Below are positions 2,203 through 59,045 of a stretch of DNA of 64,000 bases, one piece after another. The notes beneath the pieces are model-generated. The model ran no database searches, was not told the DNA's origin, and saw only the letters and a program-made list of their open reading frames with translations. The translations under genes were made by a program, and so were the position numbers. Source of the stretch: Octopus sinensis (taxonomy: Eukaryota); contig NC_043001.1 of NCBI RefSeq assembly GCF_006345805.1, positions 40,734,001 to 40,798,000 of the forward strand, given 5' to 3'. The number at the start of each line of letters is the position of its first letter. Within the stretch, counting starts at the first letter, position 1.

Positions 2203-2322
2203 ATGCTTACAGCACCTAGGTTTCCCAAGCGGTCACCCATCTAAGTACTAACTAGGGTCGATGTTGCTTAACTTCGGTAATCGGACAAGAACCGGTGTTT
2301 TCAACTTGATATGGCCGTAAGC
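2203..2322 (-). pseudogene. 5S rRNA orphon/pseudogene, full length (120 nt), followed by TTTTTT
   Basis: Minus strand GCTTACGGCCATATCAAGTTGAAAACACCGGTTCTTGTCCGATTACCGAAGTTAAGCAAC...GATGGGTGACCGCTTGGGAAACCTAGGTGCTGTAAGCAT is recognisable 5S. Helix I pairs, helix II has mismatches, and the copy is isolated. Confidence 0.9.
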
Positions 2323-3061: not shown

Positions 3062-3195
3062 CTCACCTTCCTTCTTTTAAATAAGGTTCATTTGAACTCA
3101 CATTAACTTCATTTGTATGTGTTGTTTTGTGCTGTACCATGTATGTGTGACATTTATTTTCTTAATAAAAAATTCAGCTAACAAGCCATGCTACT

Positions 3196-3236: not shown

Positions 3237-3592
3237 TTGCTGGCTTTGCTGGGTGGGGGTGCTTATATCCCCCTTTGAAAATATAAGGACAGAGAAAATG
3301 TGTCATGGCCAATAGGAAATGGTGTTTCCTGGTGCTAAATAGCAGTAGCATTCTTCCCTTTCATGGGACTGTCACATTAAGTTGACAACATACCATCACT
3401 TTATCATGCTGCTACTGTATAGATAGATATCTCTGGGAGGTTTAGAAATGTAATATTTCTATTTATGTAATGATATTTTTCTACAATTAAATCAGTATGG
3501 ACTAGAACTCTGGTATCTTACAACAAATGAATTGATTGCTTCATCACAAGTACAGATACATGAAAAATTTATCACTGTCTTTAATGACTTAC

Positions 3593-15560: not shown

Positions 15561-15942
15561 ATATACAGGTATGGAAATATTTTACTCTCAAACGCATAAT
15601 AATAATGCTGAATGGCATAAATAGGATAGAACATCCTTATGTTGCAGAAAAATTTGTTAGCAGTCAGTCATGAGACTCAAACTCACATCCCTGTGATTAC
15701 CATTCATAGTGCTTTACCTCTAAGCTAAACTGCCTACTAACAAATTCCTTTGCAATTTTTGAACTTATAAATATAGCTTTTATAGATGCTATTTGTGAAA
15801 TTACGATGTATGTTGAAATATACAGATATGGAAATATTTTATTCTCAAACACATAATAGTAATGCTGAATGGCATAAATAGGATAGAACATCCTTATATT
15901 GCAGAAAAATTTGTTAGCAGCCAGCCATGAGACTCAAACTCA
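15561..15942. repeat. Local direct duplication, ~125 bp (15561-15685 and 15818-15942)
   Basis: Offset 257. About 7 differences, all transitions. Confidence 0.9.
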
Positions 15943-21594: not shown

Positions 21595-21699
21595 TATATA
21601 TATTAATAAATTTTAGGGTAGCAAAAAATTCTCAAAAAATTCTCTGCTACCAGCGGTCAAGTGAGAAAGAAAAATTAGTCAATAGACTATATAATATAC

Positions 21700-21963
21700 A
21701 TTCAAACATATAAGGGATGGCCATAATAGGACATCCGACTCAGCCAAACTCCAAACCACTAATAGTTGTAATTCTGAAATGGAAAGAGAAATAAAAACGT
21801 TTACCCTTTCCTTTCTGGACTATGCATAGTTTCGGCAATCAGAAAGGAAAGGGTAAACGTTTTTATTTCTCTTTCCATTTCAGAATTACAACTATTAGTG
21901 GTTTGGAGTTTGGCGGCTCTTTCTAGTGAGTCGGATGTCCTATTATGGCCATCCCTTATATGT

Positions 21964-21969
<6 letters not shown>
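21700..21969. repeat. Fold-back palindrome: 118-bp arm 21700-21817, 22-nt loop, arm 21840-21969
   Basis: Arms are perfect reverse complements apart from one 12-nt indel (ctagaaagagcc). Confidence 0.95.
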
Positions 21970-21999
<30 letters not shown>

Positions 22000-22334
22000 T
22001 CAGTGACAGCGTAACCTTCACGCAACGCCAAAATAAAGAACTTTATTTCATCAAAAAATTTAGACCAAGTTTGAACACCCTGGGCCAGGAATATTAAAAC
22101 AAAACATTGGTCCTCTGAAAAAGAGAAACGAAATTCTACCACAACCACTACGACTGCCCCAACTCGCACTACTACTACAACCACCGTGGTCACTGTTGCT
22201 ACGGCCACAGTGAGAGAATTATAATAATGGAAGTGGGGCGAATTACAATTTCTCAGATCCTTAAACAGTCACTCACACTGACAGAGATATGTCTTAGGGA
22301 AGGAAAAATTTATAAAAAGATCTCTACGAGCAGA

Positions 22335-22880
22335 TCTAATCCTGATTCGTCAAAAAACTGATGACGTATTACCTCAGTGGTCAAGCTATTGTCACCCTGC
22401 TTGGTCAGTTTCCCCACACGATACAGCTATGGGTCAGACCCGATTCTGATTGGTCAAAACATTGATGACGTCTCGTTCTGCTGGACTAGCCACCTAACAG
22501 GATGATTGGTCAAAACATTGATGACGTCTCGTTCCGCTGGACTAGCCACCTAACAGGATACAGTCATGGGTCAGATCTAATACAGCTATGGGTCAGACCC
22601 GATTCTGATTGGTCAAATCATTGATGACGTCTCGTTCTGCTGGACTAGCCACCTAACAGGATGATTGGTCAAAACATTGGATGACGTCTCGTTCTGCTGG
22701 ACTAGCCACCTAACAGGATGATTGGTCAAAACTTGATGACGTCTCATTTCTGCTGGACTAGCCACCTAACAGGATTGTCAAAAACACTGATGACGTCTCG
22801 TTCTGCTGGATCTAGCCACTAACAGGATACAGTCATGGGTCAGATCTATTTCGATTCGTCAAAAAAATGATGACGTATTT
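22335..22880 (+). repeat. 56-bp tandem array (6 core units plus 2 degenerate flanking units)
   Basis: Unit GATTGGTCAAAACATTGATGACGTCTCGTTCTGCTGGACTAGCCACCTAACAGGAT starts at 22448, 22504, 22607, 22663, 22720 and ~22773. Confidence 0.95.
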
Positions 22881-23030
22881 CTTCCTATGGCCAAACTGTC
22901 ATTCCGCTTGGTTGGTTTCCTAACAGGATATATTCGTTGAGACTGGGTTTTGATTGGTGTTGGAACTATATGATGTCAGTGAAAAGTGCAAGTGACCACA
23001 GCTAAGCTGAGCCTGATATAAACCCAACAA
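22355..23030 (+). promoter_or_regulatory. Homotypic CRE-like/CCAAT cluster with a downstream TATA-like box
   Basis: ATGACGT x8 (22361, 22465, 22521, 22624, 22681, 22736, 22790, 22870), ATTGG x6, and GATATAAA near 23016. Regulatory function is inferred only. Confidence 0.45.
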
Positions 23031-23518
23031 TCACAAAATTCACCAAAATTAAACGAACAGACACCAACCAAAAATCATTACGTTGCTCCCATTGGAACAC
23101 AAGGTAAAATCTAAAATGAACTCCTCGCTTTTCAAGAACATGAATTTTTTATATTGACTCTATTGAATATATGTCACGATTATGAACTATTCATCATACT
23201 CTTTAAACATATAGCATGAACTCTCTTATTATATATAATTTTTTTTGATAAGGTTTCGTCATTTCAAGAACCAAAACATGTTAAAAATTAAAATTTGTCT
23301 AATATAGCAGCATTTTCAAACTTCATTTTTTACAAATATAATATATATATTAATATATATATATATTATATATATATATATATATATATGGAGATATATT
23401 GTAGTTTGCTGAAGCATTGTGTATTGTTTGTAAAGAATAAAATGTTTTAAATGACACAACAATGCACTATAGTAAAAACAATGGACTGTAATAACTGTTG
23501 TAATTTAATCATCCATGT

Positions 23519-24595
23519 AGTAAAAAAAGAGAGAGCTAGATGGTGGCAAGTGCCAGAGCATACCCTTGAGGTACAGAGGTCATAATATAAGTGGCAGGGC
23601 ATTGCCAAAGAAGTGTGAGTAGTGAGTGGCGGAGTGGAATGTAGTGAGTGGTGAAAACCTGGGTATATAGAGTGGGGGCTACTGGATGATATTTCGGAAT
23701 AAAAATTCCTTCTTCAGATATCACTAGGAAACAAACAAACAAACAGAAAAGTAATTGGAAAACCAATTATAGCTCAGAGGCCTACGTAAAGTTGCAGAAG
23801 TGTATGGAGAGGAGTGTATAAGCTGCACACAAGTGTACAAGAGGTTCAGACTTTCCAAGATGGCCAAAAAGAGGTCGATATTGATGAACATTCTGGGAGA
23901 TCCACAACCAGCAGAACTGAGAAAAACATTGCAGATGTGCATGCAGCTGTGAGGGGAATTTGTCGAATCACCATCTATGAATTATCAGAGGAATTATCAC
24001 TGAAGATTTGGATAGGAGACACATGTCTGCCAAGTTTGTGCCAAAACTACTTTCAACTGACCAAAAAGACACTTGGGTTCCAGTTGCACAAGATCTTCTT
24101 GAGTGGGTTGAGATCAATGAAAACATTTTGCAAACTTTGTGTAGGCCTCTGAGCAGGTATTGCCAAGCTTTTGGCAAAATTTGATGCAGATTCTCTGCTC
24201 AACTTTCTCTGTCATGGTCAATGTGACAATCACATGCTACATACTTTCCTTCGAAGCAATGCTGTAAGCAGCGGAAGTGAGCTAGAATGTTAAAACTTAG
24301 TGCACATGCACAGCAGAGTTCAAGGTCAATCTGTGCCAAGCGGCTTCACTCTGCGTGCTTTAGCTTTTTTACTTATTGATCAGACCACGTACTCACAAGG
24401 AGCAGGGATCAGAAATAGGATGGTCGAGTAAAAAATGAGAGAGCTAGATGGTGGCAAGTGCCAGAGCATACCCTTGAGGTACAGAGGTCATAATATAAGT
24501 GGCAGGGCATTGCCAAAGAAGTGTGAGTAGTGAGTGGCGGAGTGGAATGTAGTGAGTGGTGAAAACCTGGGTATATAGAGTGGGGGCTACTGGAT
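23519..24595. repeat. 169-bp direct repeat (23519-23687 and 24427-24595), one mismatch
   Basis: Base-by-base comparison at offset 908. Confidence 0.95.
23765..24391 (+). mobile_element. Mariner (Tc1/mariner) deletion derivative lacking its left arm
   Basis: Transposase remnant YKLHTSVQEVQTFQDGQKEVDIDEHSGRSTTSRTEKNIADVHAAVRGICRITIYELSEEL. The right long TIR ends ttattgatcagaccacgTA. Homologous to 41402-42170. Confidence 0.85.
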
Positions 24596-25815
24596 AGCAA
24601 TGATACAGTGCATAGGGCTATGAGGACAGGATTGGGGAGTGAGAGATAAGCATAGTGCATGAAAGAGGAGATGTGAGGTGGAGAAGAGATGTAGTTTGGT
24701 TTATTGGAGTAGGGTGTGTGAAAAGTTTTCTTATTACATGTGGGTGGAACACAGAGCTTCTAGAATTCAGTTTTGCTTACATGGGTGGGTCTTCTCTAGA
24801 ACTTCATATTGCCAGATATCTTGGTCCATTGTCATTTCCTCCGTGAGGCCCAACATCCTGAGATTGATCCTTATCACTTCATCCCATATCTTCCTGGGTC
24901 TCCCTCTGCCATGAGTACCCTCCACTTTCAGTGACCAGCACTTCTCTGTACAGTTGTCTTCATTCACATGCATCACATGCTCAAACCAACGTAGTCTTCT
25001 CTCTTGCATGCTGCATTTGATTCTTCTTATGTCTAACTTTTCCCTCAACACATTTGCACTTTGTCATACATGTACACTGATGTTGCACATCCAGCAGAGC
25101 ATACTACATTTGTTTCTCTCCAGTCTATGCATGTCTTCTGCATTCAGAGCCCATGTCTCAGTACCATGGAGTATAGCCATTCCAACACAAGCCTTGTACA
25201 GTCTACCTTTCACTCTGAGAGAGAGTCCTTTTGTTACCAACGGAGATAATAGCTCTCTGAACACTCTCCATCCTATTCTTATTCTAGAAACAATACTTTT
25301 AGAGCAACCTTCACCATTGCTAATTTGGTCACCTAGATAACAGAGACTATCTACAACCTTAAGAGAGCCTTCTGGGTATTTGAGAGAATCTAAGTCCCAT
25401 ATGCTTTCAGTGCTTATTATTCCTGCACATCTGCCACATATGAAGACGACTTTGTCTGTTAATCCACTTGTAATTCCACTGCACCTCTTATGTGTCTATA
25501 GCTTACACTGGGTACAGTGAAAATGGAATTACTTCCAACTCCTTTCCTACATATTGAGCAGGGCCATTTACCTGACAGAAAGAGAGTCTTATCTTCTTTC
25601 TTGCTAACAACAACTTTGGTCTTTACCAGGTTAACTTTAAGGCCCTTTGATTTCAGGTTTTGCTTCCATACCTGGAATTCCTTCTCCAATTCTGCTACAG
25701 ATTCTGCAGTAAGAGTGAGGTCATCAGCTTAAAGTAGTTCCCATGGGAATCCAGTTTTGAATTCCTCTGTTATGCTCTGGAGGACTATAATGAATAAGAG
25801 TTGGCTGAGAGCTGA
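24392..25815 (-). mobile_element. 5'-truncated RTE-clade LINE (RT C-terminus and probable long 3' UTR), with stops and frameshifts
   Basis: FIIVLQSITEEFKTGFPWELL*ADDL (decayed YADD), GLKVNLVKTKV, RLYKACV..LHGTETW, RRLRWFEHV, GRGRPRKIW. Confidence 0.9.
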
Positions 25816-41401: not shown

Positions 41402-42170
41402 TACAAAGTCTGGTCAATAATTATCCGGACTGTTGCCATAGTAATGAAGCTAAAGCACACAGAATAAAACCACAAGGCCACAGATTGACCTTGAACTGTG
41501 CTATGCATGCACACTAAGTTTTAACGTTCTAGCTTACTTCTGTTGTTTGTTGTTTACAGCAGTGCTTGGAAAAAAGGTGTGTGGCGTGTGTTCATCGCAT
41601 CGACCATGACAGAGTAAGTTGTCATGGCAATACCTGCTCAGAGGGCTATGCAACGTTGCAGAAAGTGCATGGAGAGGAGTATATAAACCGCACACAAGTG
41701 TACAAGTGGTTCAGACGTTTCCAAGATGGTTGAAAAAATGTCGATATTGACAAATGTTCTGGGAGACCCGCAACCAGCAGAACTGAGAAAAACATCACAG
41801 ATGTGCATGCAGCAGTCAGAAGAAATTGTCAAATCACCATCTGTGAGTTATCAGAGGTTGTGCAGATTAGTGATGGTTCAGTTCCATCTATTATCACTGA
41901 AGATTTGGGTAGGAGACACGTGCCTGCCAAGTTTGTACCAAAACTGCTTTCAGTTGATCAAATAGACACTCAGGTTTCAGTTGTACAAGATCTTCTTGAT
42001 CATGTTGAGAAAAATGAAAACATTTTAAAAACATTGCACAGGATTCTGAGCAGGTATCACCAATTTATTGGCAAAATTTGATGCAGATGATCTGCTCAAC
42101 TTTCTCTGACGTGGTTAGTGCAACAATCACATGCTACACACCTTCCAAGCACAGCTGTAAACAGCACACG
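41402..42170 (+). mobile_element. Mariner deletion derivative with long (~240 bp) TIR; right arm truncated
   Basis: Starts TAcaaagtctggtcaataa. Transposase remnant HAAVRRNCQITICELSEVVQISDGSVPSIITEDLGRRHVPAKFVPKLLSVDQ has an HTH region and a xVPxxL motif. 41560-41640 is inverted to 42040-42165. Confidence 0.87.
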
Positions 42171-44639: not shown

Positions 44640-45070
44640 GTAAATTACGAATCATATCAAAAGGAAGTCTTGCCCTGTTCTATGTGAATAATGTCTGGAT
44701 GTTTTGGTAGAATCACCAATAGAAGAGAATATAACTAAGAATTGCGTGTACTCCATCCCATGCAGCTGTGGTAGGTTATACAAAGGCGAAAGGGTAGAGG
44801 AACATCGCAGAGCTGTGACATGGGGAGATATTGATAAATTGGGTATAGCTGATCATGTATGGAAAAATGGAGACCACCTCCTCCAGTGGGATGAAGTTAA
44901 AATAATAGACACAGAACACCACTGGAAAATATGAAAACTAAAAGAAGCAGTACATATGCTAGGACAACAACAACCTCCTAAGCAAACCGAGTGCAGATAT
45001 GAACAGCATATCGGGACCAGTATTAAGGAAGGATAAGAGAATATTAGAATTATAAGCCCTAAAATTCACT
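44640..45070 (+). mobile_element. Penelope-like element GIY-YIG endonuclease fragment (pseudogenised)
   Basis: KNCVYSIPCSCGRLYKGE..RVEEHRRAV..GIADHVWKNGDH..WDEVKII..HWKI*KLKEAVHM, a typical Penelope EN with the CxC YxG and EH/H motifs. Confidence 0.88.
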
Positions 45071-57237: not shown

Positions 57238-58299
57238 ATATATATGCAGAGTATTCAGCTAAACTTGATGACTGTGTATGTCTCTTATATTTTTTTTCAG
57301 GAACAGCTTGATGAATTGGTGAACAGCCAACGGCATCGGAGAGCATAAAGATTAAATTTGTAGTTGAGAAAAAGTTAGCTGACATGGAAGGTTAGAAGTC
57401 ACCTGGATATTGGAAAAGTGTTACCATTATCATGATGATTCACACCTGGTACCAAAATGCTGGAGACATTACTAATTTACTTATGGTGTGGTAGGATAGG
57501 CAATTTAGACAAAAATTGGCACTGTATGTTAATGAAACTAACATTGGTATTAACTTCAAAATCAAAGTCAAGAGCAAAATATGTACATTTTCATCCTGCT
57601 GACAGTGTGTACTATACAACACACAACAAATTCCATCCAAGAGATTATAAAATGTCACTGCTAAATACTCCTCTAGGCACCATAAGAGAGTTTAACCAGC
57701 AACAGAGCTATTCTATACTCTATAATCATTAATATAAAATTCATGGCAAAGTCATTAGTAATTGGTTAAAACTTTGCTATGTTGGTAAAAAAGAAAAAAG
57801 AAAAATTAGAAGATAAATATTTTAAGTCAATGATCTATAAGTGTAACAATGACACAAGTAAAAATGGTTACAAAACATGTGCCACAAATCCATATATAAA
57901 CAGAAATAAAAAAAATAAAGTACACCATATAGGGTGCCAAGAAAGATCATGCACAAACCTATGTGAAACTTACATAAGAGAGACAGCTGAAGAATAGTGG
58001 TTAAAATTTCAGTAAGCATTGGAAATGCTATATCAAAAAGAAGTACACTTTCATTTTTCCTAACATGTGTAAAATAAATACAATGGTTTAGTCAATGGAA
58101 TCAACATGGATATCCTATCTTCACATCTCTGATCCAAATGCTAAGACAAGTAACTGAATAAGGTTGCATACAAGAATACAAACCCAATCTCAGTATAAAT
58201 ACGAGAGACAACAATGAACCACACAAAAGAAGTGCATGTCTTTGTTTCCTTCTCCACTTAGATAAATTTTATAGGCAGTTATGAGTGTGTGCATATATA

Positions 58300-58645
58300 A
58301 TAATAATGTTCGTCCTTCGGGTTCGAAGATGACCACTGACATCATCTGGTGGAACTGCCGCCATGAGACCGGAAGTGGCTGGTGAGACCAATCCGGGGAA
58401 GGAAGCCCCTCCCACAGGTGGGGCAGAAGTGGGTAGGGGCCGTGCTACTGGTGCAGGCGGCTCTGGCTTTCCGCATCTGGCGTTTCTGCTCTGCTGACCG
58501 AATCCGTCCCACCTCGGCTGTCCCTGCTCCTGTGGTGATTGCGCTGCGCCAGGATGAGCTGTCGGCAGCAAGTGTCTCCCAGGTCTCTGTGCCGATGGAG
58601 AAGTCTTTGAGAGAGACCTTGAGACTGTCCTTGAAGCGCTTCTTC
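58300..58645 (-). mobile_element. Young 5'-truncated RTE LINE with 10-bp target duplication
   Basis: Uninterrupted QKKRFKDSLKVSLKDF..WETLAADSSSWRSAI..CPTCGRGFLPRIGLTSHFRSH. The 3' end is tggtcatcttcgaacccgaaggacgaac(att)n. TGCATATATA occurs at 58290-58299 and 58646-58655. Confidence 0.92.
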
Positions 58646-58669
58646 TGCATATATATACATATTTACATA

Positions 58670-59045
58670 GACATAGTGTGGTAAGAAGTTTGCTTCCTGA
58701 CCACATGGTTCCAGGTTTAGTCCCACAGTGTGTGGAACTTTTTGCAAGTGTCTTCTAGTACAACCTTGGGTTGACCAAGGTTGTACTTATGAGGGGATTT
58801 GGAAGAGGGAAACTGAAAGATGCCCATCAAAATGCGTGTGTGTGCATGATTTGGTACCCCACAACTGCTTGACAACTTATGTTGGAGTGTTTACATCCCT
58901 GTAACTTAACAGTTCAGCAGAGAGACCAATAGAATAAGTACCAGGCTTAAAAAAAAATAACAAGTACTGGATTAACTTGTTCAGGTTACATATTGCAAGG
59001 CTATGTCCCAACATAGTCTAATTACTGAAACAAGTAAAAGATGAA
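58670..59045 (+). mobile_element. Family A SINE
   Basis: Head gtgtggtaagaagtttgc and body gagaccaatagaataagtacc. Confidence 0.75.

Follow-up and report, generated by a model that had tools for sequence, protein, structure and literature searches.

How did a stretch of DNA that has kept its CpG dinucleotides come to lie in an octopus sequence that has lost most of them, and what might it do there? We address this question for a 64-kb window (the whole stretch of DNA analyzed; Octopus sinensis contig NC_043001.1, positions 40,734,001 to 40,798,000), in which positions 21997-23335 form a 1,339-bp noncoding block flanked on both sides by (TA)n runs. At its center is a tandem array of sites resembling the cAMP response element (CRE) and the CCAAT box. 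The block is a promoter-like, repeat-bearing noncoding stretch of an ordinary kind and shows nothing outside known categories. We infer that it was inserted into a (TA)n microsatellite as young, noncoding, promoter-bearing DNA, a reading to which we give a probability of about 40%; what was inserted would be a mobile-element fragment equipped with a promoter, or else a promoter region copied at the DNA level from another place.

CpG retention and the tandem array

The CpG observed/expected ratio (o/e) of the block is 0.71, compared with 0.22 for the 64-kb window; no other 1.3-kb segment of the 64 kb approaches this value. For GpC, the o/e of the window is 1.04. Within the block, the CpG ratio is 0.77 in the left unique part (21997-22330, + strand), which carries a degenerate (ACN)n tract, 0.68 in the array, 0.45 in the right part at 22931-23110, and 0.96 at 23111-23335, where GC content is 24%. 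In the DNA directly outside the block, it is 0.17 and 0.21. The first CpG (22010) lies 13 bp past the left (TA)n run and the last (23257) lies 78 bp before the right one. The left run is a perfect (AT)14 microsatellite at 21968-21996, located with TRF and in the sequence itself; the right run, also located with TRF, is an imperfect (AT)~28 microsatellite at 23336-23389. Nearby, CpGs are otherwise retained only in a foldback miniature inverted-repeat transposable element (MITE) at 21694-21975 (o/e 0.65); older transposon fragments are depleted, with a value of 0.10 for a long interspersed nuclear element (LINE) fragment at 24770-25730.

The low CpG content of the window is what a gene body methylated over the long term in the germ line should show, its resident sequence, old transposons included, having lost CpGs; an intron location is plausible given this depletion. 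In Octopus bimaculoides, methylated CpGs are concentrated within a subset of genes, in both introns and exons; promoters and transposons are little methylated, and the transposons have a high CpG density (PMC9476566). A sequence newly arrived in a methylated gene body would thus be expected to look like the block. The block is either such a newcomer or a sequence protected from methylation.

The array at the center of the block (22331-22945) is hierarchical. Its outer members are two old, degenerate units: unit 1 (22331-22437, + strand; ~104 bp) keeps the core GATTCGTCAAAAAACTGATGACGT and is without CCAAT, and unit 8 (22840-22945, + strand) has the same conserved core and reads ATTCG instead of ATTGG. 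Between them lies a young inner array (22438-22839, + strand) of six units of 54-57 bp, two of which TRF places at 22447-22559 and four at 22606-22828. The six units are themselves arranged as a higher-order repeat: positions 22421-22520 and 22580-22679 are 99% identical, with 1 of 100 positions differing. The two outer ~104-bp units (around 22361 and 22870) are 77% identical to each other, whereas the six inner units are 90-100% identical among themselves; an old duplication was therefore followed by the recent amplification of a shortened derivative. The array is young. It is a minisatellite that grew by stepwise tandem duplication, in which a ~104-bp ancestral unit was duplicated once to yield the two outer units and a ~56-bp shortened derivative was more recently amplified to six copies.

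Composite sites and promoter-like layout

What the array has multiplied is a pair of short motifs. The block contains 8 of the 10 copies of ATGACGT in the 64-kb window; for the window as a whole, shuffled sequences predict 1.97. In five of the copies in the block, ATTGG stands upstream, 11 nt away in three cases, 12 nt in one, and 10 nt in one, and the exact arrangement ATTGG-N11-ATGACGT is seen 3 times against 0.01 expected. The eight ATGACGT copies count as one motif, not as independent events, because the motif was copied along with the unit by tandem duplication.

All six inner units carry the CRE-like TGATGACGTCT. The form TGACGTCT, present in six units, agrees with the palindromic CRE TGACGTCA at seven of eight positions, and TGACGTAT is found in two units. 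The inverted CCAAT GATTGGTCA occurs five times in the 64-kb window, all within the block and in five inner units; on the minus strand, five units read TGACCAATCA, which fits the NF-Y consensus RRCCAATSR. Compared column by column, the sole stretch kept in all eight units, old ones included, is GATT(C/G)GTCAAAA..TGATGACGT. The alternative base in this core marks the gain of the CCAAT box by a single C-to-G change, with ATTCG in the outer units and ATTGG in five young ones; the box, missing from the old units, therefore arose recently, among the inner ones. Both core CpGs persist in the two old units despite the 23% divergence between them. Each copy of the unit carries one composite site—a CRE-like basic leucine zipper (bZIP) motif (TGACGTC), accompanied in the five youngest copies by an inverted CCAAT, with centers ~19 bp apart. 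Judged by these motifs, the composite sites would bind NF-Y and CREB/ATF-type factors.

To the right of the array lies a proximal promoter-like stretch (22946-23044, + strand) with an inverted CCAAT (ATTGG) at 22953-22957, a CRE/AP-1-like TGATGTCA at 22971-22978, and a TATA box GATATAAA at 23015-23022. Transcription is predicted to start at ~23045, ~25-30 nt past the TATA box. From there, the promoter would fire rightward on the + strand into a putative short noncoding first exon of ~60 nt (23045-23109, + strand), proposed from sequence only and ending in the 5' splice-site sequence AAG|GTAAAA, ~80 nt past the TATA box (GT at 23104-23105). This candidate exon contains ATTAAA at 23047-23052 and ...CCCA-T-TGG at 23088-23095. 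Taken together, the multimerized CCAAT/CRE-like composite, proximal inverted CCAAT, CRE/AP-1-like site, TATA box, predicted start, exon, and splice donor follow the order of a TATA-type polymerase II promoter. By its motifs, the block has the layout of such a promoter with a multiplied upstream element, and it would drive transcription.

Much of this architecture had been anticipated in an earlier note made from the DNA letters. Its description of a 1.3-kb CpG-retaining block between (TA)n runs, of a 56-bp unit repeated six times plus two degenerate units, and of eight ATGACGT motifs, five with ATTGG ~11 bp upstream, is borne out by the boundaries, unit lengths, and counts given above, with the spacing now specified as 10-12 nt. 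The ATTGG at 22953 and the two further motifs that it had placed near 22972 and 23016 were likewise found, at the positions listed for the proximal stretch.

The minus strand of the left part carries TATAAA at 22314-22309 and AATAAA at 22047-22042. A mini-gene on that strand, composed of a TATA box, a GTGAGT donor, a polypyrimidine-CAG acceptor, and AATAAA, was considered and dropped: the donor follows the TATA box by only ~35 nt and therefore leaves no room for an exon.

Composite promoter modules that combine a CRE with CCAAT are present in cellular genes, the fibronectin promoter being one example. As in such modules, about two helical turns separate the CRE-type site of the block from a CCAAT box, and a TATA box lies downstream of both. 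The block differs in that very recent duplication has multimerized its module five to six times, its older units lack CCAAT, and no gene is attached. In mouse L1 5' untranslated-region monomer arrays and in SVA-type retroposons with a variable number of tandem repeats (VNTR), an array of variable copy number supplies or modulates promoter activity. The block shares with these elements a tandem array within noncoding sequence; unlike them, it has no LINE open reading frame (ORF) after the array, no poly(A) or recognizable 3' tail, and no readable target-site duplication.

A near-identical core occurs in one other animal sequence. We derived a degenerate pattern for the conserved core from the block itself and obtained two matches among metagenome contigs. 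One, at the start of a bacterial gene, is due to chance and was rejected. The other lies in JAAUYA010110332.1 (6.8 kb, GC 0.34), which is animal DNA because it encodes a C1q-domain protein (Pfam E = 4.7e-16); we take it to be molluscan, a guess from the commonness of C1q-domain genes in bivalves. Positions 3141-3168 of this contig are identical to window positions 22445-22472 at 27 of 28 sites, including six of the seven that the pattern leaves free. There the CRE is the full TGACGTCA, followed by CCAAT and a ATATAAAG box within 70 nt. The match is suggestive rather than conclusive and points to a shared composite promoter site, not to common descent of the whole block. The same contig holds a second, diverged, inverted copy of the core 230 nt downstream (3145-3175 against 3406-3436; 71% complementary over 31 nt), and its two core copies bracket the TATA box region.

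Coding capacity, element classes, and competing origins

The block encodes nothing. No ORF of more than 80 codons is present in it or its flanks, and the array and right part (22216-23322), translated in six frames and joined into one query, had no relative among 5.8 billion proteins. Two reading frames had been singled out in the earlier note. The ORF from 23116, which lies in the AT-rich right part (23110-23335, + strand; GC 0.24; three CpGs, o/e 0.96), has 13 codons and not 22. The threonine-rich frame before the array (22075-22221) is open and does end in two stops; it is not evidence of a gene, because it consists of 49 codons of degenerate (ACN)n without a start codon.

The host gene fared no better. 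The block had been placed inside a beta-arrestin intron, a location that Pfam and protein searches of the window ORFs did not confirm: no arrestin exon, or other coding exon, was found in the 64 kb by these searches or by inspection of the CpG-cluster regions by eye. Pfam analysis of non-repeat ORFs of at least 27 aa on both strands of the 64 kb returned only a reverse-transcriptase fragment (RVT_1, from a LINE). A comparison of 109 joined ORFs of at least 24 aa with the 5.8 billion proteins gave no known protein; exons in shorter ORFs could escape both of these searches.

We compared the block with the main classes of mobile DNA. It lacks the combination of terminal inverted repeats and target-site duplication that characterizes inverted-repeat DNA transposons and MITEs. 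As a candidate non-LTR retroposon, it has no poly(A). The (TA)n that adjoins each end could represent either the target or a tail, and AATAAA (minus strand) and ATTAAA (+ strand) each lie ~45 nt from a block end. The other (TA)n runs in the window have no common flank. Rfam searches at gathering and permissive thresholds gave no match within the block; the word CTGATGA had suggested a hammerhead or retrozyme, which was abandoned for want of such a match.

The resemblance to a long terminal repeat (LTR) is one of layout. Like a U3 region, the block has tandem repeats with CRE-like sites upstream of a TATA box. Candidate U3-R-U5 signals stand in the expected order at 23015-23095: the TATA box, the polyadenylation-type ATTAAA (23047-23052) just past the predicted start, CA (23090-23091), T, and TGG, at which a primer-binding site would begin. 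It differs in having neither gag nor pol, no second LTR in the 64 kb, and a (TA)n run that begins 244 bp past the CA. The would-be primer-binding site does not match the only tRNA-like gene in the window. When the TG at 22005 is paired with the CA at 23332-23333 on the + strand, or when a minus-strand TGT... start is taken, the flanking 4-5-mers differ, in contrast to the 4-6-bp target-site duplication of an LTR element; no TG...CA pair tried has matching flanks.

Similar in organization, and still very unlikely as an origin, is a nonautonomous, HINE-like element of the Helitron/Helentron class, which moves by rolling circle and is common in molluscs. Cg_HINE of Crassostrea gigas consists of a left flank that ends in a degenerate microsatellite-like stretch, a variable spacer, a short central satellite-like array of up to a few units, and a right flank; it lacks a target-site duplication (PMC7492417). 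The block, likewise noncoding and in a mollusc host, has degenerate (ACN)n at ~22130-22215, a spacer, its short array at 22331-22945, and a right flank at 22946-23335, also with no target-site duplication. It departs from this model in its site, (TA)n instead of T-rich/TT, in a unit of 56 bp instead of ~160 bp, in a right flank of 405 bp instead of ~60 bp, and in ends that are not TC...CTRR. No subterminal inverted repeats of 11-12 bp with at most one mismatch were found at both ends: the best match, 11 nt with one mismatch (22067/23313), has its left copy 70 nt inside the block and is at chance level, with an alignment score equal to the shuffle mean. Nor is there a clear 3' palindrome, since 23260-23335 folds at -2.0 kcal/mol with AT pairs only; the left-end stem measures 4 bp. 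Because the subterminal match is at chance level and a 3' hairpin is missing, the features that define the class are absent, despite the similar organization.

Some DNA viruses and large elements possess tandem enhancer arrays that include CRE-like sites. The earlier note had taken the block for a promoter- or enhancer-like fragment of a large DNA element or virus, an interpretation that goes too far. The promoter part of that proposal fits the motif layout; the virus or Polinton part is unsupported, and we regard derivation from intergenic or promoter DNA of an endogenous large virus or Polinton-type element as the least credible of the origins considered. Its retained CpG and a composition unlike that of its surroundings speak for such a source. 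Against it stand the absence of any ORF of more than 80 codons, of a protein relative, and of terminal inverted repeats, together with the ordinary host repeats that flank the block—the MITE to the left and mariner-like and LINE fragments to the right. Virus- or Polinton-type protein genes were found neither in the block (ORFs and six-frame search) nor among the window ORFs (Pfam). Two exact-pattern scans of 2.9 million viral contigs, one with the unit and one with the degenerate core, gave 0 matches each, although distant relatives would escape such scans. The exact pattern of the unit also had 0 matches among metagenome contigs.

Several results weigh against the preferred reading of the block as inserted, young, promoter-bearing DNA. 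Self-comparison revealed no second copy of the block in the 64-kb window. Its ends show no terminal inverted or direct repeats (end-to-end local alignment score 18, shuffle mean 17.1), and the (TA)n on both sides makes any target-site duplication unreadable. Searches of the viral, metagenome, and protein collections turned up no relative apart from the single 27/28-nt core match; that contig shows no similarity to the block beyond the 28 nt, and by our own estimate ~1 chance match is expected in so large a collection. CpG retention, moreover, is equally explained by a native unmethylated promoter. Such an intragenic promoter would be unmethylated in the germ line as an active start site, serving an alternative first exon or a noncoding RNA; its array would be a promoter VNTR that grew where it stands, with incidental (TA)n runs on either side. 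We consider this the main alternative, if on balance somewhat doubtful. It accommodates the inverted CCAAT ~90 nt, the CRE/AP-1-like site ~70 nt, and the TATA box ~30 nt upstream of the predicted start, as well as the 60-nt exon ending AAG|GTAAAA. The block acts as a CpG island in a window of CpG o/e 0.22, and many octopus genes have methylated bodies and unmethylated start sites (PMC9476566). The survival of the core CpGs in the old units points to long-term nonmethylation or selection, the block bears the hallmark of no transposon class, and another animal contig has a near-identical core next to a TATA box. What counts against a native promoter is the shape of the CpG profile: retention stops exactly at the two microsatellites and spans 225 bp of 24% GC, so a discrete piece of DNA is likelier than a start-site gradient. 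In addition, no exon or protein-coding sequence was found in the 40 kb to the right, and the neighborhood is a patchwork of young insertions.

Alternatively, the block, inserted or not, could be an inert minisatellite, in which CRE and CCAAT words arose by chance in a unit multiplied by slippage or unequal exchange and have no regulatory role. All eight ATGACGT copies do trace back to a single ancestor, the old units have no CCAAT, which originated in a single C-to-G change, and TGACGTCT is a 7/8 match to the palindromic CRE; TATA-like words are common at 35% GC, another lying on the minus strand at 22314-22309. However, no stretch of the diverged units is better conserved than the core, and a coherent order and spacing on one strand unite the array with CCAAT, the CRE-like site, the TATA box, and the splice donor. 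An inert repeat would also need a separate explanation for CpG retention, namely youth, and the 27/28 match sits in a promoter-like setting in its own contig. We judge inertness unlikely.

The significance of the block depends on which of these origins applies. If it is a recent insertion, it is one more ready-made promoter placed in a gene by mobile or duplicated DNA, which is common and of local interest. If it is a working internal promoter, the interest would be somewhat greater: tandem duplication of one composite site would have built a strong module quickly in a cephalopod, and the block would form a clear unmethylated island within a methylated invertebrate gene body. A more specific version—a native hypomethylated internal promoter in a heavily methylated gene body, with strength set by the copy number of a fast-evolving NF-Y/CREB array and a core shared, nearly base by base, with a promoter in another, probably molluscan contig—strikes us as improbable; if true, it would describe a lineage-specific, signal-responsive alternative start site made by minisatellite expansion. 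Nothing found here bears on viruses.

Neighboring repeats

The left (AT)14 run adjoins the right end of the palindromic, MITE-like foldback at 21694-21975. Its inner arms (21743-21817 and 21840-21914) are 75 nt long and 100% complementary, and its outer 49-nt arms are 98% complementary. The foldback is clearly young, as its CpG o/e of 0.65 indicates. It also gave weak Rfam matches of hairpin type (microRNA precursors), far under gathering scores.

To the right of the block, a 169-bp direct repeat (23519-23687 and 24427-24595; 99.4% identical) lies on either side of a mariner-like transposase fragment at 23772-24373, which is ~79% identical to 41636-42165. The right copy of the repeat continues into a minus-strand LINE reverse-transcriptase fragment at 24770-25728. 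The repeat pair may represent two insertions of one LINE 3' end or a large duplication. The neighboring LINE ORF has its best protein relative in Octopus bimaculoides (63% identity), in keeping with a cephalopod source.

Farther away, repeat-rich DNA contains a full-length 5S rRNA match at 2204-2322 (minus strand; 101 bits) and a tRNA-Thr(GGT)-like gene at 15660-15735 (minus strand; 36 bits), which may be heads of short interspersed nuclear elements or pseudogenes. Transposon ORF fragments lie at 44692-44931 (+ strand) and 58272-58754 (minus strand), neither with a Pfam match at the threshold used. By eye, one of the two shows a GIY-YIG-type motif and may be Penelope-like; the other, rich in GC, is a LINE C-terminal ORF whose tail resembles a zinc finger.

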